DNA of 64,000 nucleotides. It comes from Oopsacas minuta (taxonomy: Eukaryota > Animalia > Porifera). The notes below the pieces were generated by a model, which did not search any database, had not been told where the DNA came from, and worked only from the letters and a program-made list of their open reading frames with translations. The DNA is taken from assembly GCA_024704765.1 (NCBI GenBank), contig JAKMXF010000022.1, positions 635,055 through 699,054 on the forward strand, read 5' to 3'. Position numbers and translations under genes: made by a program. This document shows, one piece after another, positions 9,789 to 42,300 of this stretch (position 1 is the first letter of the stretch; each line of letters opens with the position of its first letter).

Positions 9789-12037
9789 TATTTGTTGTTT
9801 CTTATTCATAATTAGCATATAATTTAGCACATGCAATTGGAATATTTTATTGTTCTCAACTTCAGTTTTTTCTAATTTTTGTTAGTTAGTCTTTAGAGAC
9901 TTTTTGCAAAGTGCGATTTGAAATTTTAATGGTGCTCTGTAGATATATTATACTTGCCAATTATCCTGTTTTGGTAAACCAGACCAACACTAAATATTTT
10001 CCCGCTAATTATATTTGATTTTCCCTTCCTATTTTTCCCTCATCTGCTCTGATTGCGGTGTATGATTCTGACATAATTATTTCCTTCATTCTTAATGAAC
10101 TCAACTTTCAAGAATTTCACCAATTCCAGCTTGTTTAATTTTCAGTATAACACGAATAAATTGCATTGCAATACTTATCATGTTTCATGATAAGTATCGG
10201 TGGAATATCCTGTGAATACTCATTAGTATATAACACTTAAGAATGATTGTGAGTCTGAATACTACCAGCTAATTCAACAAGGAATTTGTTTAATTGGAAA
10301 GTGTGGGCTGATGTGGATTTATTCTCTCACGAATCACCAGGATGTGTTCATTGTTATTTCCTTGTGACTTTCCTGAAGCCGAAACCTATGAACTTGTTGA
10401 GGTACTCCTATTATATTTATTGAACATTGAAGTCGTTTATAAATTCATCTACCATTTTTCGCAGAATAATCACTCAACACAACAGAATTTGTGATAAATT
10501 TCTCTTCATGCTTGCACTGAACAATATGAGTTTAATATTATTGTTAATATATTCATTGTTTGACCAAATACATCCATCACTACTACCAAAATGATAAGAT
10601 CGTATTCATTCACGTACGTGTATAAGTTCAGATTCCTCCTACTTGAAAATGTTAATAAGAATTCCATGAGCTGCTACTTGCAATCGTTATCTTAATCGTC
10701 ATTATACTGGCTAATGTGTTTCAATTACTCTAAATTATTTTAATATACTCTTTTAAGTTCATAACTATCTGATGTAAACCTCATTCAGGTGCAAGACTTG
10801 TGGCAAGGAATGTTAACCTCCCACCATAATTGGTGTTAATCTGATATATAATTGCCAGAAACTATTATATGATTTAACTTGTTTCTTTATTATATAATTT
10901 ATTTCCATTTACAGTATTATCCAAGTCGTTACTCAGGTGAATTTAAAGATACGACACTCCCTTTTTATAATTAAATAATCAGATAAAAAGATAATTGATA
11001 GCGCATACATATAGTACCGTAATATGTTTACGCTCTAACCTTCAGGGCAGGTGCTACAGGTACGGTGCTCGTCGCACCAATAATTGAGAATTCCACCCCC
11101 ACAAATGGTCAGATGTGATGAATGCCACACTAATATATTTTACCCTTGGAGTAATATGATTAATATCTGGACTGAAATTAGTCGAAATTTGGAGTGGTTA
11201 TATTTCTGAATGGATGAATCTTAACTCTTTATTTGTAAGTTAAGTAACCGTCTTCTTTATTTGCCATAAGATTTGTTGTTTCGCTATTTTAGGGTCGTTT
11301 TTATAGTGCACCATTCTATATACTTGAAAGAATTAATTAGAAACATATCAATTCAATTTCCTTGATAGCTTCTCGTAGTAAATAGGACTTCTAATCTCCT
11401 TTGAGGATCCTGTTATCCATGTAGATGATAATGGGTTCCTGATTTATTATTGCAGATCATGGCACTTTTGGTAGTATAGCTAATGTTTCGATGATACCTT
11501 ATATAGATTCGAATATTTTAACACAAACATTCATTCATTTATTATAAATGAGAATTATTTGCTAGATCTTAAATCAGTTCATTTATTTTAAACTGTTTAA
11601 TAGCGAATTTATTCAATTGCGTTTTACTAGTAAATATAATTATTTGTTAAATATCATAAATTGTAATAGATAACATATGATTACATTCTATAGTCTATAC
11701 TATGACTAAACTTCTTGTAAAATTTGATTGTTTAATATATAAAAATTTCACTATATCATGATCATGTCTTACAATGCTTGTTTTAAACCCTTAAAAGGTC
11801 TCTTTCATGTGTCGCAATGTTCCCGTCTGGCACTAAATAACCTCAAATCTTAGTCTAGGTATAAATTCTATGCAATTATACTGCATGAGCTAGAAATTTA
11901 TAATTTTATTCATCGACACAATGTCTGCATTTTTATCGATTATTCTTTGAGATTAGTCTATTTATAAAATTATTTTTTGGATATTAAATTTGTTTTGCAA
12001 GTATTTAAGTATTCGCTAATTAATTAGCAGTAGCGTT

Positions 12038-15000
12038 ATGTCAGATTTACCAAAGGACTGGGAGGCTGTAGCTAGTAAAGATGGGACATATTACTGGCAT
12101 ACAGTGACAGGAGAGGTTACATGGAAAAAGCCGAAACAGCCTTCTAAACCTAAGCCCCCTCCCCCTCCTCCTCTTCCCAACTCCCCTATTGTCTCTGAAC
12201 CACCAGATGATTTGTATAATTACACTGACGACTATACACATGCTTTTCCTAATTACCAACCTGTGCAAACGTGTTATCAAAATGTTGTTTTGTTAAAAGA
12301 ACCCTCTCAAGATGATATCTCACCTTCTAAAGTTAAAACCGTTGATAATTATGAGAACGTTGAACTAATACAGAGACCATCTAGTCAAGATGAAATAAAC
12401 AAACCTGAGAGTACAGACAAACCAACATTAGATAGATATAGGGTGAGATGCTGGTAGTATTAGTAGATAGTTATCTATTAATCTTATTAGGCAATAATAA
12501 CGATAATATATCCAGTAAGTTCGGAGTAGATGATTAGTCCAGTAATGAGCAATAGCATAGTGTTAATTTCTGTAGCTAGCAAGTTTAACTTAATCCAGAT
12601 GGAATTTCATAACTGTTATAATTGTTTGCAAGTTTTTATATTTCTAGCTTTTGAATTGCTGCCAAATTTCTTTAATTAAATGATACAAACTGGAAAATCT
12701 TCAGCATCCGATTGAGAAATTTCAAATCTATTCAGATTTAAATTTCTATATTCAACTAAGCAATACACTCTAAAATCAAATTTATGGATTACTTTCTATT
12801 TATTTTTTTCGAATGCTGAATTCGATAATTAATCCAATATGTAACACCTAGCTTAGAGACTCAAGCATTTCCACTTCTACTCAAGGTTACTAATATTTCT
12901 TCTCCATGTCATATAACATGCGGTGAATACTATGAAATATAGAAATAATAGAACTGATTTAAATATACTAATTTGGATTTTAAATGAGAGAATTATTGTT
13001 ACAAAGGAGACGCAATATTTTTCGGATTAGTTATGAGCGCCAGCTTGATGTTTAAGCAGAGAGTGAGAGACTTCAAAATAAGCCCACTTAATGTAATATT
13101 AATTCTATGTAACAGTTTCATTCATAATATAAATTATCATAATAAGCGAGTATTTCTACTCTTCTTAAATATTCATTAATTGAGTCTATTAATCTCATTG
13201 GAATGTAATCAACAATCACATTTCAATTAGTTTATAATTCTATTACTTAGGGCCCTAGTGATAGTGAAGATCCGTATACTTGTGTGAACAAGGCTCCTGA
13301 CCGGAAGAGCAACTTCCGTCACTCAGCTGTGAAGAGAAAATTGTCTAATAATGTTGAAGAATTGGTAATAACTCGAGAAAAGGTAGATGTTAATGGAGCT
13401 GATAAAGTACCAGATATTCCTATCCGATCTCCTTCCATATATGACGACGAGGAAATTTGTAATAATCTCCCAGTATCCCAGGTCTATCCAGAGGATTCAG
13501 GTACTCAGTTCGCAGTGCCATTTTCAGATCAGGTATTCCTTATATTCATTTTTATTGTATAATGTATTCATGTATATTGTTATATTAAAGTATAGAGAAG
13601 TGGATAAGCCAGTTCTCATTAACGATCCACACTCATCACTGACTAAATTACCTTCCTATGACAAAGAACAAGACCCTCTCCTTACTAACGAATGTGATAC
13701 CAGTACAACTCAAACAGAAGTAAATAATCAGTCTCGTGATAGCGGTATTGGCCTCTCCTCCAGTTCTCGTGTTAATTCATACCAATCTAATTCTCCTTTG
13801 AAGTCTACTATCACTGAGAGGCCTGGTACACTGTATGAAAATGTAGAACTACCCTTTGAGAAGAATGTACCAACTACTCCTACCAAAGCACTTACCGAAG
13901 ACAAAACACTTCCTGAAGGTTGGAAACAGGTAATAAATTGATAACGTACTCAAATCATATTTCATCCAATACTTAAGAGTTATTATTACAGTGAATGCTG
14001 GTTATAAGGACCCCTTTGAGAGTAGCAAATAAGCAATAAATATACAGGAATATATGAGGACCGTTTTCCAGAGGATTGTGCTTATAACCGGAATCCACTG
14101 TATTTACATTTATGCTCTGGTTAGGTTGATTCAGATAACGGAGATGTATACTACTGGCATATAGAGTCAGGTGCCACACAATGGAACTTCCCAGAAGGCC
14201 AGCCTCTCTCTCCAATGCCTGTTATTCTCTCTGAAAAGATAAGTGAATCTTCCCAGCCTTCCACTCCATTATCTACATTTTCATTACCAAAGGTACCTCT
14301 ACCTGAACATACAAATGTACGGAGCTTCTCTGCTTGGCTTATAGACATACAAGACATAAATTCTAATGAGTTAAAGCATGGTAACTGTACTAACATCATA
14401 GAGAATTGTATACAGAGTGTGTCTGATCGTCTACAAGGTGATCAGGAATTAGAGCAGCAAGTTGTGCTTCAGGTGTCACCAGGTGTGTTAAAAGAATTAG
14501 ATGCTCAAACTAGTTCTATTAACAAAGCTTATTCTATCACTCGTATTCGTGCTTGGGGATGTAGCAGAGAAAATTCTCGGTAAGTTTTATCTGGATAGTT
14601 TTTATACTTTACAAGTTATAAACTTTATTCTAAATCTTATTTAATACATGTGTCCATCTGTAATCGCACTTCATTGTGAAGTATGAACAATTGTCGCATA
14701 ATCAACTGCGATCTAGATTTAACGTTGTCAATAGTGTGATTTTAATCGTCGAAAGAACTTTAGTCAATACTGTAATGAGGAATGTCTGATTTAAATATTT
14801 TATCACTCAAAATTCCTTATTATTTTGAGGAAGAAATTAACTTTTATGAAAACTTACTCTAAGATGGTACTCTAACTACAAATTTTACTAAATTTAGATA
14901 CATATGCACTTTGTATTCATATTGTAAATTCAATACCAGTGGATAGTTTGGGTGATAAAGTAGCTAGTATATCGATTCCATTATTTTTAGATATTTCGCA

Positions 15001-16119
15001 TATATAATTCGTCACAGTAAGAGTCAGGTTTACAAGTGTAACATTTATAAGTGTGCAAGTTCTGCGAAATCTCTCACACTAGCACTGAAAGATTTTTCTG
15101 GTAAATCTGCATCAGATAGCTCCACCCAATCCCCTTCAAAGGATAAGAGACAATCAACAGTATCAATTGGAGAAAACGAGTCGTGTAATCAACAAATAGA
15201 TGAAGGAGAACAATATCAACGATTCAATGTAACATTTCTAGGTTCTATTAAAGTAACAGAAGAGAGCGGTATTGAATTGATTTGTTCAAGTTTGGAGAAA
15301 CTTAAAAACCAGCCTGCTAACTGGATAGAAGCTATTATTGATATTTACACTACTCATTTCATAATTGTAGGAACCAAAACAGGTGAAGTTCTGACGGAGA
15401 CTAGAGTCCGTTTTCTATCATTCTTAGGTCTCTCAAATGACGATAGTATGTGTGGATATATTACTGGGGATGATGATACATACTTCTGTCTTGGTTTTAG
15501 AATGGAGCCGAATTCTATTCAACTTTCTCTTGCAATGAAGGACGCTTGTGAAAGCCGTTTTCAGCGAGTTTGTAAAGGAATTCCTGACGATTCGATCAGA
15601 TCAAATTCCTCCTCTCTCAAGAAAGGTGATTCTACTATCTTGAATAAAGCAGAAGTAGCTTCAGAAAAGATAGGCGGTTATTTCAAATCAAAAATGAGTA
15701 AAGTTAGTAAGCAAGTTGGACATAAACTACAGAGAACATCTAGTGCTAAAACTATATACGGAACTTATCAAGTACAACTCTATGGAAGTGCTCAAGTGCC
15801 AATTGACAATGACAAAAAAGCTGTAGAGGAAGCTATTTCATATCTAGAGAGTCAGAGTAATCGATTAACAAATCCACATGTTATAGAGTTCCAAATCACA
15901 CAAGGTGGATTTATTTTCCTAGACAAAGAGAAACGTAAATTTACGAAGAAAGTATTTTCAATTACTAACATAAGATATTGTCTGAAGAAAGGCCATTCAG
16001 TTGCTTTCGTAGTTATGAACAAATCAGGATTATTCGATGCTTACGCGTTTGGAGAAATAAACACAAATGCAAGTGTCATTATTGAAACGATACAAACAGC
16101 TGTAAATGAGAATGTTTGA
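12038..16119 (+). CDS. Fe65/APBB-like adaptor: WW-WW-PTB-PTB-PTB, 5 exons, ~869 aa
   Basis: Exons 12038-12442, 13251-13532, 13591-13929, 14125-14579, 14991-16119 splice in frame. WW1 LPKDWEAVASKDGTYYWHTVTGEVTWKKP; WW2 LPEGWKQVDSDNGDVYYWHIESGATQWNFP. PTB1 ITRIRAWGCSRENSRYFAYIIRH...YKCNIYKC resembles Fe65 IRVWGVGRDSGRDFAYV. PTB2 FNVTFLGSIKV...RVRFLSFLGL. A third PTB-like domain starts at YQVQLYGSAQV. Confidence 0.8.
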
Positions 16120-17553
16120 CCCGCTTTTTGTCACGAAACTAGATACCTAGATGTATTTATTGCTATCAACTAACTTAGTCCAGAGAGTTGTTTTTATTAC
16201 TGTTTGCATGTTATCTTCTCGAGATGAGAACTATTTTAAGCTCCCCTGACCCTCTCCCTAACTTTTTGGTAAAAATTTTTATTTATTCTTTGATAAATTC
16301 AATCTCTGTGAATTTGTGTAATTTTTGCTATCAGATTGTTGGTTTACATATTCGTTGTTTTGCACTATTAAACATTTACAAGTAAATCCGATTTTATAGA
16401 TACGTACTATTTATTATATCTGCAAATTTTACATATGTGCTGCTAAATATATACATATTCCGTATATATATTCCGTATACATATTATTCCAATTCACTAC
16501 TTTCGTTAAATTTGCTTCATTTAATATGTGTTACATATATTTGTGTGCCACTTCCACTTCCAATTACTAAACTTTGCGCTTCCTGCCATGTGTTTACGAT
16601 TGAAACTGGATTCTCTAATTTGTTACAGTTAGTTGCTATAGAATTTGTGTGATACATATCAAATTATACGTTGCTGGATTAATATGCAGTAGCTTTGTAT
16701 AAATTATGTATTCCTACTAAACTACAAGTAGTTTTGGATACATGACTCGCCAGTACTTCGCTTGCTTTCTTGCTCATTAGCTGTGGAGAACGTGGAGAAC
16801 AGGAGGTAGATTACCAATATTACAGTAGGCACTGAGGTTTGATCAAACTATTCATTCAATTGCTATTTTACTTCATATAATGTTATATTATTAAGCTAAT
16901 AGATGGTATCTTTACCATACCATAGACCCACCATGTCCTTACCAATTAATAATTTGATAACTCTCGTGATGCAGTCGAAACTGTTTTTGTGCTCAGCAAA
17001 ATACACAGTAAATAGGCATAACAACCAGTTGCGGCCCCAGGGGACAAACGGGGCATTTGCCCCGGGTTTGAAATCTTATGCAAAATCTTGGATCCGCTCC
17101 TGATAACAACCTTAGGTGGGTAAACCTTAAGATTGGAGATTTTGCATAGTTGAAAGTAAAATCCTTATTGTATCAATAACTGACTTATCAAGACCACTGC
17201 TTATATCGAAGCAGGTCTGACATTTTCATATAATGCCAGTAAAACATCACTCACAACGAACTCAAATACAAAATCAAGGTTACATTATAGAACCTAACCC
17301 AAAACTCAATTAAATGATAACTTATAGAACCTAACCATTCCTTTCCCAGTAAACTAGTGATACATTGATTACTACATCATTTAATACACTATGCGATGTA
17401 CAACACAACACATACAACAATTTGCTTAGTTCTGCTAATGTAGCAAGCTACTGCACATTTATTGCTTATGGCTCCATCAGTATAAATGAGTGAAAGTACG
17501 CTTATGTTTAGGTGAATTGGAAAAAGACTTTACAAACACAATCCAGATTTTTC

Positions 17554-19940
17554 ATGTCTGATCAGACGCCTGAACTAGCATGTTCCACTCTTCCAGATCC
17601 TAAAAATTGTGATCAATCAAAAGGTAAGTTAAACTTATACACTATCCTGTCAAATACGTCCTCGTGGCTTCCGATTTATCTGTGAATATCGTAAGCACTG
17701 GAGACAAGTTCACCTGCATAATCCGACACTGTCCCGACGAGTGTGAGCTTATGCAAGTTCTACTGCATATGGTAGTAATGGGTCATTAGTTCTCTGGATA
17801 ATCACTCTATATGTATATACTTCCTAGCTACTGGGTACACATGATAAATATTGCCACATACTACATTTGTATATGTAAATGAAGATATTGGTTAGTCATG
17901 CATGATGAACTATTGTGTAATATATAATATTAGTGTTATTAATGTGTAGTATTATTAACAATAAGAAAATGTATTGAAATACGTATATACCTGCACTACA
18001 TAAATTTATTTCTCGACAAAAATCAGGGGCGTAAACTTGGGGTGTGCGTCGGGTGCCTAGCACCCTGGCGGCTGTGATGTCATGGTGCCGAAGGTATCTG
18101 GCACCCTGGCATTTTCAAACTGAACTAACCCCACAAACTCAATTTATCAGGTGGCGAGCGAAAAAATTTTCTCTTAACAAAAATTAAGACAAGGTTTCCT
18201 AGTTTTAGTGTCTGTTACCATCCCAAGAGCAAATCTTGCCTAGCGTTGCTAATTCCTCATTACGAGTTCATCAACAAGCTGTGATTGATCAAGTGTATCG
18301 ACATTGTTCTTGTACACAAGAACATCGTCGATACAACAATGTGTCGTGGCACCCTGTGTGTTTTGACGAAGTTTACGCCGGTAACAAAGACCACTAGTTA
18401 GATCTTATAATTATACTTTGAAATTAGCTACGATGAATTTTATCAGTATTTATCTAATTTAGGAAAGAGGAAGAGGTTTGACGTGCAAACAGGTAAGAAA
18501 ATAAACAAAATCGATTCAAAGCAAGCACTCGGAGTACCAACCAATTTAACTGACGAGTCTGATCCCCAACACAAAGGCCACCACAATGCAGTTGAGAAAA
18601 AGAGAAGAGATAAAATGAATACTTACATTCAAGATATCCGTCACCTGATCATAAAATCTTCTGATTTTCAAGTCAGTTGCAAGAGCGATAAGCTGAGCGT
18701 CCTCAAAGCAGCTTACCAATGCTTGTGTAAGATGAGAGGTATCCCCAATGTCTCTGCCAGCATAGATTGTCCTTCTTTCCTCTTCGAAGACGAAATCAAA
18801 CAAATAATCTCCAAAATGAAATGTGGCTTCATCATGGTGACAGACGCTACAGAAGGCACAATCGTATGGGACTACAATCTTGACATAAATCTAGGCTACA
18901 AAAAAGGGGAACTGTTCGGCTCCAGCATCTTCAGCTTAATCAAACAAACTGACGTCACAACCTATAAACTCAATTCTATTCCAAACACCACCGGATTAAT
19001 ACGCATAGCCAACAAACGATCTTTCATCTGTAACTTCATCTCCAAGGCTGTTCCTATCACTCAAGAGCTGTCTAGCTCACTCGAAACCTACCAATACCTT
19101 CCTATTCTTCTCTCTGGAGAGGTGAAAGAGATACAAACCTCCTTACTACTCGGGGACAGGGCCGCTACTTCTGACCTGGGGGAGTGCATCAAGTGCTTCA
19201 TAGCAATCGGACAGGGATTAACTACTGAAGTGCTTGATGTTACTCAAGACATGAGAGAGAGTGTTAAAGTCTTATCTAGAGAAGGACCAGATGGTAAAAT
19301 TGAGAACATACACGACTCCATTTTTTATATATTGGGGTACACGCCATCTGAACTAGTAGGACATACTTTTTTGGAATTTGTACACCCTCATGATGGCAAG
19401 AGATTATATAATTCTCTATTCGAAGCCTCAAATATTAGAAAGTATACTGAATTGATTTTTATACGTCTAAAGCACAAATCAGGCATTTATAAAACAGTCT
19501 CAGTGAAAAGGCTAGCTGTACGCCATCCCACACAAGGTACTATTACTTCCTTCATTTCCTGCATGGATGAGACATTCATCCTGGAAGAAAATTGGGATAA
19601 CATGTTCCCTGTTGAAGTACCCATTGTTGAGAAATTAAACGACCCATTTGCAATGCTGTGTCAAGAAACATTCATACCCCGAATATTCCCCCTGGAAATG
19701 GGAGTTGAACAATCTCAGGTTCCTTCCTATCCCAATATACTAAACCCTAAAGATTTTGATGGAGAACTTTCGACCCTTTTTGACACGCCCATTTTCCTTA
19801 AGGAGGCAGTTGAAAAATACGAGTATGCTCAGAATTTTGTTAATCAACCATTTGAAGGGCAGATTAATAACAATATCCCCACCGGTTTCAATAGCCTGAT
19901 GACTAACTTTGTTGATATTTTCACAAGCCAGCCCTTTTAA
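17554..19940 (+). CDS. Class II bHLH-PAS transcription factor (ARNT/BMAL1/CYCLE family), 2 exons, ~515 aa
   Basis: Exon 17554-17623 splices in frame (phase 1) to 18463-19940, adding a KRKR NLS. bHLH HNAVEKKRRDKMNTYI...KSDKLSVLKAA; PSFLFEDEIKQII linker; PAS-B ILGYTPSELVGHTFLEFVHPHD. Confidence 0.85.
18024..18383. mobile_element. Degenerate hAT-type MITE in the bHLH-PAS intron
   Basis: GGCGTAAACTT (18028-18038) and AAGTTTACGCC (18369-18379) are exact inverted repeats. Flanks ACAAAAAT and ACAAAGAC match at 6/8, consistent with an eroded 8-bp TSD. Confidence 0.6.
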
Positions 19941-32133: not shown

Positions 32134-35100
32134 ATGAGTAGTAATATGTCTGGGGTTCAGTCTCGAGTGACTGAGAACTGGCATCAGCTGGGAAACCTGT
32201 ATCTGCGAAAATTTGATTTCTACGAGATGGCATGGATGGATATGTTTGACATGGACAAGAGTATGGTAGTGCCAGCACCTTTTGGTGGTTATATTGCTGT
32301 TGTTGTAGATCCTAACCGTCTGAGCGAGTCAGACAGAGAGCTTGGGACTGTAACCCAGGATAAAATTCATCTCTACCGTCCAACCGGAACCCCTACTGCT
32401 CTCGTGAAGTGGGACGGTGGAACTGTAGCAGGGATGGGCTGGACACAAAATGAAGAGCTTATGGTTGTATCAGAAACAGGAATGATGAAAAAATTTGATT
32501 TGTTTGGTAGATCAAAGGTAATATTAGATCTTATACATTCAGATTAAAAGATATAATTTTAAATATAAGTATATACTACTATAGATACAGCCACAAAACA
32601 TTCTACCACAAGGACAGGGACGTATCCAAGAGGTACAATTCTTCCAGAACCGTTACGGAACAGGTGTAGCCTGTCTCACTACTACAATACTGTTCTGTTA
32701 TTGTACGAATATAAATGAGCCTCGTATGAAGTCTGCCTCTCTAGCAGCTCTCCCTGAAACTACTAGGAGACTAGATTGCTGGCTTCCTGTTGAGATATTA
32801 GATACTGTAGCTATTCTAGCTTCATTCAACGGACGTTTGTACTCACTTACTGTAGATACGTCTGAGGAGATTATAGTTAAGACAAGGTGAGTGTTCTGTT
32901 AGAAACTTCAACTTAAATATTTATAGTCTTGTATCTCAGCTGTCCGAACGAACCTCGTTGGGAACGAATGGCTCTTTCAATCAAGACAGAATCCACTTCC
33001 CAGAAACTAGCTCTCTTCAACTCTCAACAGGGTTGGTTATGGATGGGAGATATTAGTGCTCCTCACAGACAGGTTGATCTAGAAGTATCTCTCTCTAAAA
33101 CCAAGCGAGACTCTCCTCCCTCACAGATCTGCTGGCTAGCTGCTGATGCTGTTGCTATGAGTTGGGAGCATACTCTGTTGGTACACTCTCGTAGAGGAGA
33201 GGATTGGGTTAAGTACACTCTGTATGGAGCTGTAGTCTTGCTACCAGAAGTAGATGGGATTAGAATATTACATCCAGACAGGTTTTTTATATATTTTTAT
33301 AATTCATTACGTCAGTATAATTATAAAATTTTCCATTACAAGTGTTAATCTGCGTTGCCTCTTACTTATCTATTAACTCAGATTATGTTTCTTACCCTGC
33401 CTGCTATGTCCGTCAATGTATTCTGAAAATTTTTCAGTGATCCACCCAAAAATTTGTTTGAACTGTACAGTAGAACTCGGATAAACCGTGTACCTCCTCG
33501 GGGAACAAAATTGTTTGCAATTAAATAGTCGCGCGCTCCTATAGTGCTCTGACTTTATACCAGTTGACAATGTAATTAATTGATTGTCTATAGACACGAG
33601 TTTTTACAGAGAGTGAGTACAGTATCTGTTCAAGTATTCCAGACAGGTAGTATAGCTCCTGGAGGTATTCTCAATGATGCACTCAAATTATATTCCGAGA
33701 AGGAGGGTCACAAAGCTGACGAATATATCAGACTTATTAAGGAGAAATCAGAAACTGAAGATGCTATCAAACAATGTATTTCTGCTGGAACTTTAGAAAT
33801 AGATCCTGAAGTACAGAAGAGCTTGTTCCTGTCTGCTGCTTTTGGCAAGAGTTTTTTAGGCGGGGAAACCATATCTGATGACCTCATTAAACAATTTATG
33901 TCATCCTGCAAACAGCTGAGAGTTCTAAATAACTTGAAAACTGCAGAAGTAAGAATCTCTATTTCATATTTTTCTACTTATGTACGTATAGTTGTGTATT
34001 AATCTTGTATTGTAGGTATCTCTGCCGTTAACCTACGTACAGCTCAATACACTGGGTCTCCCCGAGCTGATCTTACGTTTGATAAGAAGGAAGATGTTCT
34101 TCTTAGCACACCACATTGCCTCCTATCTGGAGATACCAGCTGGCCTAGGTACACATCAGGTACTGTTAGAGTGGGCTAGTCTTAAGTTACAGCAGCAAGA
34201 ACCGGATGAGGTGATAACATGGGATATTGAAAGTTGATGTATTTCGGGAAAATTGCAAATTTTGATTTTATTTATATTTCGAAATATTATTTGTATTATT
34301 AGGTAATTGCACAACAGATTTTATCAAAATTCAGAGACACTCCTGGCATTAGCTACTCATATATTGCAGAAAAAGCTCGATCAGTTGGTCGTCCAGATCT
34401 AGCAACACTACTACTAGAAGAAGAAGCATCAGCTAGTGAGCAGATACCCCTACTGCTAGATATGGGGAGAGATGAGATAGGATTGGATAAAGCTATCAGT
34501 AGCGGAGATCCTGATTTAGTATACTCTGTTATATTCAGACTACAGAAGAAGATGACGCGAGGAGATTTCCTACTCGCTATCCGTAACCGTCCAGTTGCTA
34601 GAAACCTGTACTTAGATTTCTGTAAGAAGCAAGAACGAACAACTCTATACAATTTGTTCCAACAGGATGATATGTTCCTAGAATCTGGTATGATGCGAGT
34701 AGAAGAGACACTAGATCATGAAATACAGGAGGAGAGGAAGAAACTGTTAGTTAAGGCTAGGTCTGATTTCCAGAGTGGAGGATGTGCTCTCTCTATATCT
34801 CTCAGGTAAGTTATCAAACAACAACGAAATATTAGTTGATAACTAATTTGCATATTACAGTCATTACTAAGTCTAGGGGCGCGGGGTCTAAGCCAGGGTG
34901 ATCCAATTTTATTATATTAGACCTTATGGTGTTTATATGGGTTTCTTTTCAATGAATAAACTACAGTAGAAACTCTGAGATTCGGGAAGTCTCGTTCTAA
35001 GGGTGTCCTGTTCTCAGAAAATAATAATAACTCTATCTATGATAGATCAAATTTGTGTATTGTAATATGAAATATTGAAATTCATTTGAATTGGCGAATC

Positions 35101-35783
35101 TATATTTGTTTTAAGGGTGTGTAATTACTAAGAATATTTCCTAAAAATGGACAAATTATGCCCTGGTGGCGTCTGGATCACGAAGGTTAGAGTATATCTC
35201 TACTGTCCCTGAGTACGTCTATGGTACGTATCTTATCCATTGGAGAATGTTTAATTGATTGTTTGTTAGTGAGGATTACATCCGTCTTTACGAGAAACAA
35301 AGAGAACTTGAAGAGTCTCTTGGTAACCGATTTAACATGACTGGTCTCTCTGTTACTGATACGCTAGAGAAGTGTTTCATACATCATCGAGCTAAAGAAG
35401 CAGAATACATACGTAAGGAGTTCCGTATATCTGATAACCAGTTCTATTGGACAAAGATTAAAACTCTAGCAGCTCTGCACGATTGGGCGGAGTTAGATAA
35501 ACTTGCACGTTCCAAAAAACCTGTAATCGGTTATGAGCCGTTTGTAGAAGTGTGTCTAAAGAATGGGAGCCTCGGGGAGGCGATGAAATACTGTCAAAAG
35601 ATACCTTTAGACTCACGAGCACATGCTTATATAAAATGTGGTGCTTATAGAGAGGCAGCTGATGTAGCTTTCCAATGTAAAGAAATAGGTATTTTAGAAA
35701 CTATTCTACAAAAGTGCGGTAATGACAGAGCTCTGACAGAAATTGTCCGTCAGCAGTGTGAAGCATTAGCACAGAAAGTATAG
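32134..35783 (+). CDS. VPS16: Vacuolar protein sorting 16 (HOPS/CORVET), 7 exons, ~864 aa
   Basis: Exons 32134-32517, 32585-32886, 32940-33281, 33594-33948, 34016-34210, 34303-34805, 35270-35783 splice in frame. Motifs APFGGYIAV, MGWTQNEEL, LPEVDGIRIL, LFLSAAFGKSFL, LDKAISSGDPDLVYSVI, KIKTLAALHDWAEL, PVIGYEPFVEVC. Confidence 0.94.
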
Positions 35784-35927
35784 TATAAATTATCAATCGG
35801 GTGTATACGTTTATAATGTTTGTATATATTAATTCAATGATATATATACTATTATGTCATTTTTGCAAGAATTAGTAAAATTCGGTTAATTGTTATATGT
35901 TTTTCTCAGCTAGAATTTGGACTAGCT

Positions 35928-38864
35928 ATGGATGAAGCTGAATTATATGACGTCATTATAATTGGAGGAGGGCCAGTAGGGCTCATTATTTCCCTACTGC
36001 TGGAAAAGTACAATCTCTCTGTAGCGGTATTTGATATGAAAATTTCATTTCCAATCATCCCCAAAGCTTTACATTTAAGTCAATGTACTATGGAAATATT
36101 GGCTAAAATCGGTATTTATGATAAAATACTTCAACATTCTCTTTCTAAGGATTATCCCTTTACTATGAAGGCCTCGATTGGAATCACGAAACCACCATTT
36201 TTATATTTCACCATGGATACACGTGAAGAGATTACCAAGGATTTTGATTCTGCAGTTTACCAATTCCAAAATGGAAGAATTTCGAAAGCAGAATCAGTAT
36301 TTCTCCCACAACCCAAGTTAGAAGAATTATTGTTTGAACAAATTCGTAATGAAACTAAGGTTAAATTATTTTTTGGAACAGAAGTTATTAAGTTCTACCA
36401 AGATGGGGATAGTATTGTCGTTCAAGCTAAATCTTTGCAACACGAATCTTCTCCTCGTATTTATCGTTCTAAATATTTGATTGGATGTGATGGAGCCAGG
36501 AGTAGAGTTCGTAAAGAATTGGGAATACATCTTCATGGTGAAGTAGGCCTTCAGAATTTTTTGATGATGTATATAGAGTCAGAGGATGTGTATAATAAAT
36601 TCGAAAATAATCCTAATTCTCATCGGTTTGGAATTAGCACTTCATTTCAAGATGATAGATTTATAATGCTTTTCCATATGCAGCATGACAATAGATTTAC
36701 ATTTCATGCAAGTGGAGGTTCTAGTCGAGATATTTCAGAGATCGTTAAAATGGACAGGAACGAATTGGTGAGGCGCTTCTTAGGTAGAGACATTCGTTTC
36801 GAAGTAATTGACTCATCTGAGTGGCACGCTAATCAGCTGATAGTCACACATTTCTACAAAGGACGTATATTCCTAGCAGGAGACTCTGCTCACGCCTGGA
36901 TTCCTGCTGGTGGGTTTGGACTAAACACAGGGCTACAAGATGCAGTCAATATTTCATGGAAAATAGCAGCTATGTGTCAGGGCTGGTCGGGACCTTATTT
37001 AGCGCCATCTTATCAGGTAGAGCAGAAGACTTATGATTATAACGTAATGAGAATGGTATCACAGGATATTGAACCTTTCCAATTTTCTGTTCTCCCTCTC
37101 TGGATGCGATTATTGACACCATTTGTAAAAATAGGTTTACTACTGTTTCCTAAGAGAATAAGAAATATTGTTAGTCGAGGATTTAAGTTTATAGGTTATC
37201 AGGTTTTAGGTCAGAGACATATTGCTTCTAATATTTGTGTGTTCGAAGAAGATCATACTCAGCGTTTGAAACCATTCGCACATCCTGACTCCGTTGTGAT
37301 AGAGGATCTCCCTGGGTGTCGTGCTCCTCCTATCCTCCTTAGCGACGGGACACAAATCAGGAATGCGAGATACGATACTTTCTTGATACTCAGTTTTGTA
37401 GAGAATTCGAATTTCGGTAATTTAATAAGCCAAGCTTCCACTAGATCAATTCCTGTAGATTATGTTTATGTGAAGAAAGAAACTGATTCAGTTTATAAGA
37501 AGAATTTCTATTTAATCCGTCCTGACAGCTTCATAGCCTGGAGATCAGATCGTATACCTCAGGGTAGAGATATCGGGGATATATTGGATAGAGCAGTAGG
37601 TTGGATTAAGCCTGAGAGATTCAATCCTGTCTATGTGGATTGGAATTGGAAGCATTACCCTAATGCTACCAAAGAGTTATGTATTGTAACTCCTTTAGTA
37701 ATCAGTTGTGTATGGGCATTATCTCTTCCAATGGTTACCATACCTACTCTTATACTAATGTATTGTAGTACTCTATTGTATAGAGTTAAATATCCTAAAA
37801 CTACTCCCAGGAAAGAGATAATGTCAAGACATAGAGCTGTGTTGTGTAACTCTCCAGGTAATCCTCGTGATGTAATGAGTTTAATTTCTAATCGTTCTTG
37901 TCAGATAGAAGCTGATGATATAATCGTTAATGTAAAATCCGCTGCATTACATAATATAGACTATAAACTGTGTCGTGGTTATGCTGCTAACTTGTTGAAT
38001 TTTGTCTTCTCTTTAAGTTATGAGAAAAGATACCCTCTCTTATTAGGGAGAGATTTCTCAGGAGAAGTTGTTGTTGTGGGGTCTAATGTTAAGAATTTTG
38101 TCCCTGGTGATAAAGTGTATGGATGTCGTGACATTTCTTCACAAGGCACATTATCAGAATTTATTTCTGTTAATTCTAATGAACTGAGTTTAATGCCTGA
38201 ATCTATTTCGTATGATCAAGCTGCTTCTCTTCCATATGCCTACTTAAGTGCTGTAAGTGGTTTGAACAGAATTCCAGCTGATTTCCTTAAGGATAAGAAC
38301 GTATTAGTGTGTGATGTAGGTACAGCTACTGGGTTAATTCTAACTCAATTGCTGGTGCATAGAGGTGCTAATGTACATGTTTGGTGTAATGGAGAATTCA
38401 ATGTTGAGTTCTTCACTGCAGGTGCTACTACTGTGTTTCTACTGAGAGAGAAGTTAACAGGCTTAAATTTTTCTAATTTTGTTGCTGTATTCGATATTAA
38501 TGCTGGTGTCAGTGATTTTCCTCCAGCACATTTTACTATAAATAGAGGTACAAGATTGATTAGTTGGACGCGACCAGGTGCTCGTATCATCGAACAATAC
38601 GGACCTGTTTTTGGCACAATCCAGTCTCTACTCACGACTCGGAGTAACATATCCAGTTTTGCTAAATTAGGTGTAACTTTATCTTATGTAAGCTTGAAGG
38701 TAGAATTTAAAGTGTTTGATGAGTTATCTCAAATGATAGAAGGAAAAATAGTGAAACCTCTGAAAGGGAGAATGTTCAATCTATCCGATTCACCTGAAGC
38801 TCTGTCTTGTTTTGAAGATGTAGATTGGATGGGACCAGCTATCATACAAATATCTTGTTATTAA
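35928..38864 (+). CDS. Fusion: FAD-dependent aromatic hydroxylase (FAD_binding_3, PheA/TfdB-like) + hydrophobic hairpin + MDR quinone/enoyl reductase (RTN4IP1-like), intronless, 978 aa
   Basis: GGGPVG, LIGCDGARSRVR, GRIFLAGDSAH, PAGGFGLNTGLQDAVN, PGCRAP and LIRPDSFIAW (aa ~1-560). Hydrophobic segment at aa ~583-620. DIIVNVKSAALHNID, YPLLLGRDFSGEVV, FVPGDKVYG, AASLPYAYLSA (aa ~634-978). Confidence 0.85.
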   Translation: MDEAELYDVIIIGGGPVGLIISLLLEKYNLSVAVFDMKISFPIIPKALHLSQCTMEILAKIGIYDKILQHSLSKDYPFTMKASIGITKPPFLYFTMDTREEITKDFDSAVYQFQNGRISKAESVFLPQPKLEELLFEQIRNETKVKLFFGTEVIKFYQDGDSIVVQAKSLQHESSPRIYRSKYLIGCDGARSRVRKELGIHLHGEVGLQNFLMMYIESEDVYNKFENNPNSHRFGISTSFQDDRFIMLFHMQHDNRFTFHASGGSSRDISEIVKMDRNELVRRFLGRDIRFEVIDSSEWHANQLIVTHFYKGRIFLAGDSAHAWIPAGGFGLNTGLQDAVNISWKIAAMCQGWSGPYLAPSYQVEQKTYDYNVMRMVSQDIEPFQFSVLPLWMRLLTPFVKIGLLLFPKRIRNIVSRGFKFIGYQVLGQRHIASNICVFEEDHTQRLKPFAHPDSVVIEDLPGCRAPPILLSDGTQIRNARYDTFLILSFVENSNFGNLISQASTRSIPVDYVYVKKETDSVYKKNFYLIRPDSFIAWRSDRIPQGRDIGDILDRAVGWIKPERFNPVYVDWNWKHYPNATKELCIVTPLVISCVWALSLPMVTIPTLILMYCSTLLYRVKYPKTTPRKEIMSRHRAVLCNSPGNPRDVMSLISNRSCQIEADDIIVNVKSAALHNIDYKLCRGYAANLLNFVFSLSYEKRYPLLLGRDFSGEVVVVGSNVKNFVPGDKVYGCRDISSQGTLSEFISVNSNELSLMPESISYDQAASLPYAYLSAVSGLNRIPADFLKDKNVLVCDVGTATGLILTQLLVHRGANVHVWCNGEFNVEFFTAGATTVFLLREKLTGLNFSNFVAVFDINAGVSDFPPAHFTINRGTRLISWTRPGARIIEQYGPVFGTIQSLLTTRSNISSFAKLGVTLSYVSLKVEFKVFDELSQMIEGKIVKPLKGRMFNLSDSPEALSCFEDVDWMGPAIIQISCY

Positions 38865-39355
38865 TTATTCAAGTTATCAACCATATGGTTAGATTTATCA
38901 TCATATCAGCATTGTCAGTATAATATTATTGAGGATATGTGAGAATTATTATAATGTATTATTGTTTTGATATTCTTCTTTTTATTCATTTATGGTATCA
39001 TTTGGTTACAGATAATTGGCGAGTAGGCTGACCATACTCACCAAATGGTAAAGGATGTAGTTTTATCAAAGTTTTATCCTCCGTCACAGTAGATACATAA
39101 TTTCATTTCTACCTGGTATATTCCCTATTGCATATTTTATAATACAAACTAAACTACAAATATATATTCATCTTGTATATGTAGGTATTTAGCAAGTGGA
39201 TTTCTAATCAGTTATTTGGCAATCTCTAAAGGTGAATCAGATTTCTAAGCTGCAACCTAATAGCTGACAAAGCTATTCGTATCTCTATAAGAGCCTTTTT
39301 GTTAGTAGTTTTAACACTTTTCTATTTTATTCTCTTCAACTAAATCAGTTATAAT

Positions 39356-42300
39356 ATGACAGAAGTTCTACCCCTTCCTGACAGATGGGCTGAGTACACT
39401 AGCAGACAAGAATCTATAGCTAATGAGTAAGTACAATAAACTCTCGTTACAACGAATTGCTCGGCATCCAGGTTTCATCTCGTTATAAGCGGTTTGTCAT
39501 TGTAAACGGAGTAAAAGCGATTACTTTACATCTATAGGGGGTAAAGAATCACTTCTTTAAAACGGAAGTTCCGTTATATCTGACTTGACGGAAGTTTACT
39601 ATATTGCATTTCGTTAACTAATGACAATTATTCAAAGCAATGCGAAACGATTTTGCATAGTGTAAACTTCGAAAAATGCTACTTCATTTTCCTCGTTTCC
39701 ACTGCCCCCTTTATGAGGTTTACTGTATGGAAATGAATAACATTTATACATTTCATACACACAGTTGCAAATCTCTACCCTGAAATGTTTGTACATATTA
39801 TGTATCAAATTTCGTGTTAATCGAACAGTTATAGTGACGTACTCACGTACGGATGTCAGAATTGATTCATGCAATATCTCCCTATATGAGTTGTAGTAAT
39901 AATTTCCAATGGTAATGTATTGTACGTCATCGTTTACATTCAATATTTTAGTGAGGAAAAGAAGTCAGCATGGACACAGAATGGTCATACTAATAAGCCT
40001 CATATTATTGGTGAGTTGTCAGAGTAAAATCTATTAGTTTATTGTTTCTCTCCAACTTCTGAACCTGTAATATAACTGTAACTTAGGTTATTTATATTTG
40101 ATTCATTTGTAAGGGTTAGAACTCAACTTAGAAGTGTTGATTTTTATTTTAGCAAACCGCAGTTGACTACCCTGCTGGAGTATTTTAGTACATATATTTA
40201 AAATCCTTACTATTCCTCTACCCTACCTACAATCTGAATAAATGTATAGAATTGCTAAAGTATTATTTTTAGATACTTTGTTAATTAAGTTACACCATGA
40301 CATTACTATTCCTGAGCTATAGATATAAAGCTCCTGATGAATTGAACATATTCCTACCCTCTCCATAAATCTAGTCTATCATTTAAACTATTAGCCCCTC
40401 CTATATGTCTCTCTAGTACAGCTGTGACCTGGTACAGCCAGTACAGCTCTCATTTATAGGAGTAGGATATCTTGCAGTTACTGGTTTATTCGCTTACGTA
40501 TTCACTCATGACTATCCTTTTGCATAGACGTGATATATATGTATCAAATTGCAATATATTCTTGGTGGCAAATTGTAAAGCTCTGTACCTAGTGTTAGGA
40601 GAAAGGAGTTATTGTTAGAGTACTAGTATTTATTAGTATTTTAAGAATTTTATATTTAATCTCAGAATAAATGCTTTATTTTACTTACAATATCAGATGG
40701 TTATAGTATCCGTCACTAATCACGAATTAATTGATATTAATCTTATATGAACAATGTAGTGTCAGATTGCCTATATGACCAATAAAATTGTGGAAATGAC
40801 CTAAATATCATGACTGGGAAACATACAAATATTAATAGGAGACTTTGTTAGAGGAAATGTTCTTGATTGTGATGTTTCCGGTCCGATCACAGTCGCTAAG
40901 TTTGTAGCATGTTGCAACACTAATTCGATTAGATTGGATTGATTGGGTTGGAATCTTTATATTAACACATTTTACTATCAGTATATATTATTTATTTATT
41001 TTAAATATTTTTACAATTTTCTTTATTTTAGTTGATAAGTCAGAATCCATTGATTCAAGATTTTACGAAAAAGTTGACTCTAGATCTGGGTAAGTTGTAA
41101 AACTTCCCGCATGATTAGTTTATTGCAATCTAGTTACTCTAGTATGCTGACATTCTCAGATAAGTTATGTAAAACTTCAATCTATTTATCATTATTCATT
41201 TAGTTCTCCTTCTTCAATGATTAGTGACACCATAGTGAGTTATAGTTTCATAAGTATTTATACCTATATTGTATAATACGTTATACGTGATCTATTTTAA
41301 CGTATTATACGTCGAGGTTAAGTTCGAGATTTTTACATTGTTAGACTTGTATAAGTCACATTATTATCAAGAATTAGATAATTTGGTCAACTATGTTGAG
41401 ATTTCTCATTAACAATTCGAGAGCTACTGTTTTGATGCAAAATATTTATTAGGCAGATATCAGCCTAATAGAAATTACGTCACCAAAAATTGTAGATTGA
41501 ACGTATAATACGTATCATACGTATCATACGTAATACATCTTCATTGAAACACGTATTAAACACTCATTTTACTATTAATACAAACTGTAAATATTCAAAT
41601 CAAGATTAAAGTATGTTTTAGAGACATAATTATATTTCCAGATAGAACTCTTTTGGTGATAGGAATTTATTAAATTCACATTTATCGCTCAGCTGGGGTT
41701 GATAGTATCGCTGACTAAATCTCCCGATTGTGGAATTGGTTCGTCCAATGATTACCAACTTTGAATAATACTAATTTACATTTATATCAAGGAATTTGTG
41801 TAATATATTCAACTCCTAATTAGCAGTATCGATATATCAAACTTCTATTGTTTAATCCATCTCTCATCTCTTTACAGATAATTCCGAAATAAATCAGTTT
41901 AGTCTTTCCCTTTACGGAATTATTCCTATTTGATATTGATAATGTCAAAGTTCATAATTCGTGAATGTATTAATTTCTGAGGTAATTCTGTTATCTTATG
42001 TTTCCTAGCTTATTTGTATTCTATTTTATTGTTAACTACATGTGATAGGCCCCAATGTGTCTGTTCTTATTTATTTTTATTCTATATTCTCCTGGCTAAA
42101 GTATTATACAATTTGAAATATTTTCTTTTACTTTGGAGAATGGAATTTGATTATCTTTGAATAATTATATATTATCCAATTACTCACTCACATTATTCAG
42201 AATCTGCGTTTTTTCGGTCAAACCAGATAGTTTTAACCGGCTTTAAACTGTCCTATCCAAAATCTATAGTGAACAAATCTATATAGAATGCGTTCTACAA

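Follow-up and report, generated by a model that had tools for sequence, protein, structure and literature searches.

A 64,000-nucleotide stretch of the genome of Oopsacas minuta (assembly GCA_024704765.1, contig JAKMXF010000022.1, positions 635,055 to 699,054 of the forward strand; hereafter the window, numbered from its first letter) carries a gene whose single open reading frame (ORF) joins a flavin-dependent hydroxylase, a membrane hairpin and a domain resembling the reductase RTN4IP1 in one chain of 978 amino acids (aa). It is a real nuclear gene of a glass sponge, expressed and free of introns. Comparison of its sequence with those of its relatives suggests that the product is a phenol hydroxylase anchored in a membrane and that the quinone reductase fused to it has turned into a non-catalytic module, a reading to which we give a probability of about 0.55. 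Both enzyme families are already known; it is their fusion in a single membrane-anchored chain that is new. The fusions fall into a glass-sponge clade and a second clade (see below), and 11 of them, from both clades, were aligned. An earlier description of the window, made from its letters without database searches (the sequence-only reading), had proposed several of the features discussed here, and we say at each point how its proposals fared.

The hydroxylase half keeps its flavin motifs

The N-terminal half of the protein (aa 1-560) can be assigned to the RebC/PRK06126 type of three-domain group A flavin hydroxylases, with every flavin adenine dinucleotide (FAD) motif intact. Its features are as follows.

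35946..37034, + strand: FAD-binding and substrate domains of a group A flavoprotein monooxygenase, aa 7-369 (Pfam FAD_binding_3)
35964..35981, + strand: GxGxxG motif GGGPVG, aa 13-18 (G13, G15, P16, V17 and G18 invariant in 11/11 aligned fusions)
36486..36503, + strand: DG motif CDGARS, aa 187-192 (C187, D188, G189 and S192 invariant in 11/11 fusions)
36873..36941, + strand: GD motif and flavin-contact stretch LAGDSAHAWIPAGGFGLNTGLQD, aa 316-338 (11-fusion alignment)
37308..37601, + strand: thioredoxin-like C-terminal domain of aromatic-ring hydroxylases, aa 461-558 (Pfam Rng_hyd_C)

The FAD_binding_3 model (PF01494) matches aa 7-369 with an E value of 3.5e-59 and 201.2 bits against a cut-off of 22, and the Rng_hyd_C model matches barely above its own cut-off (29.8 against 27.5 bits). 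Fourteen residues of the GD region are invariant in the 11 fusions (A317, G318, D319, A321, H322, W324, P326, G328, G329, G331, N333, T334, G335 and D338, with GDSAH at 318-322 of LAGDSAHAW, aa 316-324, reported invariant as a block), as are L529, I530, R531, P532, D533, I536 and W538 of the C-terminal LIRPD..AW module (aa 529-538). All of the motifs by which the sequence-only reading had recognised a group A monooxygenase (GxGxxG, DG, GD and LIRPD..AW) are thus present, and Pfam agrees with its assignment. The best NCBIfam family is PRK06126 (aa 6-560, 333.9 bits, below the cut-off of 445), which would make the half a relative of that family and not a member by the NCBI threshold; the TIGR01988 model of UbiH/UbiF/VisC/COQ6 proteins gives 70.8 bits, far below its cut-off of 224.65.

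The best sequence match in the Protein Data Bank (PDB) over aa 8-557 is RebC (E about 1e-40), and PnpA and enzymes of the pentachlorophenol/rifampin monooxygenase type are among the other matches. Foldseek likewise aligned the half to RebC (E 4e-41, TM by target 0.86-0.89, identity about 23%), and also matched it to PieE, GrhO5, RubL, an MbnF-type enzyme and HbpA. Its structural neighbours in the Protein Atlas are hydroxylase clusters that cover the half and are 84-100% bacterial; a feature-based search of the Atlas gave no usable match. The N-terminus of the protein, MDEAELYDVIIIGGG, is acidic and enters the Rossmann fold directly, without a mitochondrial presequence. The sole other group A hydroxylase match in the Oopsacas genome is a 496-aa ORF like kynurenine 3-monooxygenase (970-2460 of locus L007, - strand), which has a C-terminal hydrophobic segment.

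A predicted membrane hairpin joins the two halves

37665..37790, + strand: hydrophobic helical hairpin, aa 580-621 (Kyte-Doolittle hydropathy, AlphaFold2, contig of read run X4)

Outside the Rossmann folds, strong hydrophobicity is confined to aa 583-613, and the Kyte-Doolittle mean exceeds 1.6 for windows within aa 582-613. An AlphaFold2 model of the whole protein, built on a 106-sequence alignment of the fusions and both stand-alone families, has a pLDDT of 90.6 and a pTM of 0.90. It places here a helix (580-597), an S-L-P turn and a second helix (601-621) that is followed by basic residues (YRVKYPKTTPRKE); the two helices are modelled at a lower confidence (pLDDT 65-84), as expected for membrane helices. 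Hydropathy and model therefore both support the membrane hairpin that had been proposed between the halves. Such a hairpin would put both enzyme domains on the same face of the membrane, probably the cytosolic one, an orientation that fits the basic residues following helix 2. A two-chain prediction of aa 1-575 with aa 625-978 scored 0.00 with controls not run, and has no bearing on whether the halves touch.

The reductase half has lost motifs but is strongly conserved

37830..38861, + strand: RTN4IP1-like medium-chain dehydrogenase/reductase (MDR) domain, aa 635-978 (PDB sequence match 2vn8)
38301..38333, + strand: degenerate nucleotide-binding loop VLVCDVGTATG, aa 792-802 (loop alignment)
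38817..38837, + strand: DVDWMGP, aa 964-970, replacing the G-H-x-R-G-K of RTN4IP1-like reductases (alignment with the second clade, animal RTN4IP1 and bacteria)

The C-terminal half has human RTN4IP1 (2vn8) as its best PDB match (aa 663-973, E 1.2e-27 to 4.7e-27, 100 bits), it matches the Pfam model ADH_N (PF08240) over aa 662-757 (E 2.9e-10, 40.8 bits against a cut-off of 23.5), and it contains the HNID and LGRDFSGEV (aa 706-714) sequences from which the sequence-only reading had named it RTN4IP1-like, a name that these matches uphold. With a profile of the C-terminal halves, the RTN4IP1 proteins of crinoid, amphioxus and frog reach 311-316 bits and the best named bacterium 281 bits. Neither Pfam model of the nucleotide domain (ADH_zinc_N, PF00107; ADH_zinc_N_2, PF13602) matches the window protein at E values up to 0.1, whereas both match a fusion of the second clade (P0010), whose C-terminal half reaches 221 bits against human RTN4IP1 compared with 100 bits for the window protein.

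In 8/8 proteins of the glass-sponge clade the nucleotide-binding loop reads V/L-L-V/L-C-D-x-G-T-x-T-G, whereas nine other fusions or fragments with a readable loop, animal RTN4IP1 and bacterial relatives all have VLVHGG[ST]GG[VI]G or a close variant. In the window protein CDVGTATG thus replaces GG[ST]GG[VI]G, and the glycine-rich A/GxxGxxG loop for NADPH is absent; the second clade retains the canonical form (GGTGGVG). In addition, LGAD.(V/I)IDY has become AGATTVFLL in the glass-sponge clade, and the GHxRGK motif near the C-terminus has been replaced as listed above. In MDR quinone reductases the loop, IDY and GHxRGK contact NADPH. The degenerate loop had been noted before from the window itself; the canonical sister clade and the two further lost motifs extend that observation. 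The GroES-like part of the domain is 79% identical within the glass-sponge clade and 34% identical to the second clade, and the corresponding values for the Rossmann part are 67% and 21%.

Seven full-length relatives of the window protein (975-980 aa, 57-69% identity) came up in a word search, all of them in ENA assemblies and each encoded by a single ORF. For three pairs dN/dS was estimated by the Nei-Gojobori method, and the two halves were contrasted by a Fisher test.

hexA/hexC (closest pair): dN/dS 0.34 for the whole protein, 0.46 for the hydroxylase half, 0.19 for the MDR half
hexD/hexE: dN/dS 0.15 whole, 0.18 hydroxylase, 0.12 MDR
Oopsacas/hexA: dN/dS 0.17 whole, 0.22 hydroxylase, 0.11 MDR

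The MDR half is under tighter constraint than the hydroxylase half in 3/3 pairs (Fisher p = 7e-4, 0.027 and 9e-4, respectively). It is the combination of lost motifs with a constraint stronger than that on the hydroxylase that points to a pseudoenzyme.

Proposed function

Group A hydroxylases turn phenols into readily oxidised quinols or catechols, and the N-terminal half would most likely hydroxylate a lipophilic aromatic (phenolic) substrate with NAD(P)H and O2. An 887-aa protein (P0174) combines a hydroxylase of this family and a BphC-type extradiol dioxygenase in one chain, and this also points to dihydroxy-aromatic products. RTN4IP1 is described as an NAD(P)H quinone reductase that keeps coenzyme Q (CoQ) intermediates reduced for methyltransferases (bioRxiv 10.64898/2026.07.16.738879; see also PMC10830421). 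The ancestral fusion would then most likely have hydroxylated a lipophilic phenol at the membrane and kept the resulting quinol reduced with NADPH, as those of the second clade may still do. On the stem of the glass sponges the reductase half changed drastically, losing its glycine-rich NADPH loop and the two other conserved motifs. It has been under strong purifying selection ever since, and most likely now serves as a non-catalytic module with a part in substrate or product binding, or in the scaffolding or dimerisation of the hydroxylase. A two-step enzyme that hydroxylates and then reduces, as envisaged in the sequence-only reading, is accordingly plausible only for the sister clade; in glass sponges the reductive step has probably been lost.

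The fusion is a genuine sponge gene

35928..38864, + strand: fusion gene, single exon, complete with stop codon, 978 aa (ORF listing, ATG start)
35259..35783, + strand: last exon of VPS16, the conserved upstream neighbour (ORF listing; GT..AG joint 34803/35268 in run X4)

The ORF listing agrees with the earlier account of one uninterrupted 978-aa ORF just downstream of VPS16: 144 bp separate the VPS16 stop codon (35781-35783) from the ATG of the fusion, and the stop-to-stop frame around the ORF is 1007 codons long. A 978-codon open frame in DNA of 36% G+C cannot have arisen by chance. ORF and flanks have the same G+C content (0.37 in the ORF), and the gene is present in one copy in the 61.46-Mb genome searched (61,460,524 bases in 365 contigs; the published genome is described as 365 scaffolds, ~61 Mb and 36% G+C, PMC10280926). 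The fusion gene has no introns, and the neighbouring genes have them. VPS16 is followed by the fusion in 5/5 related loci (L001 and L021-L024, with Vps16_N/Vps16_C ORFs directly upstream), and PHAX lies further along on the opposite strand in 3/5 of these.

Four public read runs were mapped to positions 34300-40200. Runs X2 and X3 tile the locus evenly, as DNA would, and do so across the junctions as well. Run X4 behaves as cDNA, although its kind is not on record as RNA: it has TruSeq adapters, its depth is very uneven, and it contains GT..AG joints in both neighbouring genes. Its contigs are distributed along the entire fusion ORF, and one of them (37591-37984) links the last part of the hydroxylase, the hairpin and the first part of the MDR domain with no break and no stop. 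X4 depth is 0 at 35816-35897, inside the VPS16-ATG gap, and falls to 10.5 in the 38831-39027 bin. The even tiling by X2 and X3 and the stop-free X4 contig across the join answer the concern that an assembly error or a stop might separate the halves, and the conserved VPS16 synteny, the host-like G+C and the coverage by a cDNA-like run bear out the earlier argument that the gene is not contamination. Between the assembly and runs X2-X4, which come from the same sample, there are five fixed differences in the ORF (36855, 36923, 37066, 37244 and 37681); three of them alter the protein (Y310H, D380G and C585S), none creates a stop, and they could be either alleles or assembly polishing errors. A sixth difference (37007 A>T, synonymous) is on a single low-depth X4 contig.

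A polypyrimidine-CAG element (ttttctcag) 19 bp 5' of the ATG, within 35898-35927, resembles a 3' splice acceptor; no splice joint to it was present among the runs mapped to the locus. Downstream, another gene on the + strand begins ~500 bp past the fusion stop (39358-39426, then 39952 onward), with a GT..AG intron (39427-39951) whose joint 39426/39952 is present in X4.

Distribution of the fusion

A profile of the 11 fusions was run against 1.84 billion cluster representatives, which stand for ~15 billion predicted proteins. The best 150 matches include five full-length fusions, P0007 of the glass-sponge clade and P0142-P0145, and four fragments (P0146-P0149); P0150 is MDR-only by Pfam, and the rest are stand-alone hydroxylases or stand-alone MDR proteins. 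In this search the fusion was found only in the glass-sponge clade and in one second clade of marine eukaryotes. A literature search found no paper describing a hydroxylase-RTN4IP1 fusion, and the architecture does appear to be undescribed, as had been suspected.

The second-clade proteins come from unannotated long-read assemblies and metagenomes, are 968-992 aa long and are about 25% identical to the window protein. Their neighbours by Pfam are of eukaryote type (a P4-ATPase exon, WW, NHL, DDE_3 transposase and MFS), and they often occur in tandem copies. At two tandem loci (L002 14912-17747 and L012 9308-12466) the second copy is split in two ORFs (905 + 55 aa and 101 + 876 aa, respectively), a sign of an intron, a frameshift or decay. 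One cluster at 90% identity (P0009) has 11 members on four contigs, and on a Tara metagenome scaffold (L013 3279-4547) an ORF for an MFS transporter lies 70 bp past a second-clade fusion on the same strand.

The junction region was also scanned in 185,579 prokaryote species, one genome each. The only two full-junction matches are 987-aa ORFs ~125 kb apart on one 1.52-Mb contig, CBDBCZ010000016.1, binned in a 'Nitrospirales' metagenome-assembled genome of about 16 Mb. This contig (C16 of the bin) has Ras GTPases that score 150-163 bits, including one whose gene an intron interrupts, and ORF-poor DNA around the fusions; for these reasons we take it to be a mis-binned eukaryote contig and rejected it as a case of a bacterial fusion, leaving no bacterial fusion among the 185,579 prokaryote species genomes. 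Intron-split genes for Ras-family GTPases are present on contigs C16, C17 and probably C13 of this bin, which is chimeric.

Origin of the fusion

Separate phylogenies were made of the two halves, a check that the sequence-only reading had called for. In the tree of N-terminal halves both fusion clades form one group (SH-aLRT 97). Its sister (SH-aLRT 95) is P0012, an unfused hydroxylase of 605 aa from the hemichordate Ptychodera flava, and the eukaryote group is nested in a mostly bacterial family with some fungal members. The P0012 gene has 10 exons over 8.9 kb (10001-18931 of locus L025, CM083795.1), and its product ends in a hydrophobic tail (aa 582-605) that coincides with the start of the first hairpin helix of the fusion. 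There is no RTN4IP1-like or MDR gene within 10 kb of this gene.

Neither of two trees of the C-terminal halves, a quick one and a careful one, placed the glass-sponge domain, because its stem branch is very long (2.5-3.4 substitutions/site, against 0.2-0.5 for the second clade). When all fusion C-terminal halves were constrained as one clade, the tree was 6.9 log-likelihood units above the free tree and was not rejected (p-AU 0.73). The quick tree had grouped the glass-sponge domain with divergent insect RTN4IP1, a placement that we set aside as probable long-branch attraction. Three residues at the border of linker and MDR domain (R634, H635 and A637) are invariant in both clades (11 fusions). 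Three RTN4IP1-like proteins, P0297 of the amphioxus Branchiostoma floridae and P0259 and P0427 of the crinoid Anneissia japonica, have N-terminal segments like transmembrane (TM) helices in place of the mitochondrial presequence, which in P0297 and P0259 lie just upstream of the MDR domain; the crinoid has a presequence-type RTN4IP1 (P0249) in addition.

The best explanation of these comparisons would be that the fusion arose once, in a eukaryote lineage. Probably a tail-anchored hydroxylase like that of Ptychodera was joined to an N-anchored RTN4IP1-like quinone reductase like those of amphioxus and crinoid, and the two anchors would have become the hairpin; a hairpin made of two joined anchors would leave both domains on the same side of the membrane. 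The sequence-only reading had suggested that the hydroxylase half was horizontally acquired. A recent or sponge-specific transfer is not supported, since this half groups with the other fusions and with the 10-exon Ptychodera gene; the hydroxylase may have entered an early eukaryote or an early animal by an ancient transfer, since the eukaryote group is nested in a mostly bacterial family, though the tree fixes no direction.

Alternative explanations

The glass-sponge MDR half might still be active, holding NAD(P)H or another nucleotide in its odd loop and reducing the quinone, or some other group, of the hydroxylase product. Its strong conservation (dN/dS 0.11-0.19) would agree with this, as would a GroES-like domain that keeps the family invariants ID.K...GY and LGRD.SGE and a fold that AlphaFold2 models at high confidence, and divergent insect RTN4IP1 homologues also show altered loops (GGSTPVG and GGCTPVG). 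However, both key glycines of A/GxxGxxG are replaced and an Asp occupies the first position of the loop, the IDY and GHxRGK motifs are gone, neither Pfam nucleotide-domain model matches, and the changes fell in one very long stem branch, so we consider activity unlikely. We think it quite improbable that the protein is a CoQ module, in which the hydroxylase would replace or assist a COQ6-type step and the MDR half would serve the COQ metabolon. RTN4IP1 does support CoQ synthesis, the N-terminal half has weak similarity to Ubi hydroxylases, and amphioxus P0297, used as a query, found two genes (L009 1468-2487, L010 1204-2448), namely an orthologue of zeta-crystallin (1yb5, 320 bits) and one like VAT1, and then the fusion, but no separate canonical RTN4IP1; this search was made exon by exon in six frames and may miss an RTN4IP1 gene of many short exons. 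The acidic, presequence-free N-terminus, the internal position of the MDR domain, a TIGR01988 score showing that the hydroxylase is not of the UbiH/COQ6 type, and the loss of the NADPH loop needed for RTN4IP1 chemistry all speak against the CoQ link drawn in the sequence-only reading, and we do not retain it.

A recent bacterial transfer, an assembly chimera or contamination would be in keeping with an overwhelmingly bacterial hydroxylase family (the Atlas clusters above; the named matches are mostly bacteria) and with an intronless gene among intron-bearing neighbours. This explanation is largely refuted by the VPS16 synteny in 5/5 assemblies, the G+C equal to the flanks, the DNA runs that are even across the junctions, the cDNA-like run that covers the gene, the lack of any prokaryote genome with the fusion in the scan and the 10-exon hemichordate gene as nearest unfused relative. 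Very little likelihood attaches, too, to a functionless relic drifting to loss in the Oopsacas lineage. Such drift was suggested by a fourth run, X5, from the nearest relative (~95% alike), in which 21 of the 29 changed codons in aa 246-454 are non-synonymous and eight synonymous, and by the three protein-altering changes among the six differences between assembly and reads. Against it, the 978-codon frame is intact, the FAD motifs are invariant, cDNA-like reads cover the gene, and pairwise dN/dS with orthologues is 0.05-0.34; the X5 contig (36634-37438, aa 236-503) has no indels in the ORF, its indels being confined to the surrounding intergenic and intron DNA, and its changes fall where the family is least conserved, in two stretches.

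Several points also weigh against the reading that we prefer, a membrane-anchored phenol hydroxylase with a reductase turned non-catalytic. The X5 changes over aa 246-454 are compatible with near neutrality of that stretch. The loss of NADPH binding in the glass-sponge MDR half is an inference from sequence motifs. Instead of a hairpin, aa 580-621 might form one long span that crosses the membrane at a tilt. The X4 contigs cannot reveal transcript ends or exclude an internal start, and a shorter isoform is possible. The two C-half trees are unresolved at the base, where the glass-sponge stem of 2.5-3.4 substitutions/site is prone to artefact, and they do not settle orthology to animal RTN4IP1. 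Finally, the second clade is placed only as eukaryotes, so that an animal-wide ancestry of the fusion is not established.

Significance and relation to known systems

Sponges are rich in prenylated hydroquinone and quinone meroterpenoids of unknown biosynthetic origin (PMC3707164), and animal-encoded natural-product pathways in sponges are only starting to emerge (e.g. PMC12833800). The fusion is a candidate host-encoded tailoring enzyme in sponges. One might go further and read it as a Rosetta stone for a non-mitochondrial pathway of early-branching animals that pairs a membrane phenol hydroxylase with an RTN4IP1-like keeper of quinols, a candidate step towards those meroterpenoids in which the glass-sponge reductase would be a pseudoenzyme that controls or feeds the hydroxylase. 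The tandem expansion of the second clade would fit specialised metabolism, but this wider proposal is speculative and we hold it to be doubtful. If it were true, deuterostome invertebrates should show this pairing too, between their unfused tail-anchored hydroxylase and their TM-anchored RTN4IP1-like paralogues. More generally, a natural fusion links RTN4IP1-like reductases to a flavin hydroxylase, a hint that this disease-linked family may have partners beyond CoQ synthesis, and the two clades are matched for the study of pseudoenzyme evolution, with a reductase that is canonical in one and motif-dead but more constrained in the other.

Among known proteins, hydroxylases of the RebC/StaC type (RebC, PieE, GrhO5, RubL, MbnF and HbpA) share with the N-terminal half the FAD-binding, substrate and thioredoxin-like domains and the GxGxxG, DG and GD motifs; the sponge protein differs in being only ~23% identical to them, animal-encoded, fused to a hairpin and an MDR domain, and below the PRK06126 cut-off. 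Kynurenine 3-monooxygenase is an animal group A hydroxylase with a C-terminal membrane tail, as is found in P0012, but it belongs to another subfamily (E about 1e-5) and has neither the thioredoxin-like domain nor a fused reductase. RTN4IP1/OPA10, the mitochondrial NAD(P)H quinone oxidoreductase, is the best match of the C-terminal half both among solved structures and among named sequences, whereas the sponge domain is internal and lacks the presequence, the glycine loop, IDY, GHxRGK and any match to the Pfam nucleotide models. Bacteria pair phenol hydroxylases with quinone reductases in PnpA/PnpB (p-nitrophenol) and PcpB/PcpD (pentachlorophenol). In these pairs the hydroxylase makes a quinol or quinone and the reductase returns the quinol, which by analogy would be the logic of the ancestral fusion; unlike these separate soluble proteins, whose reductases are of other families, the fusion is one membrane-anchored chain with a reductase domain of the MDR/RTN4IP1 type.

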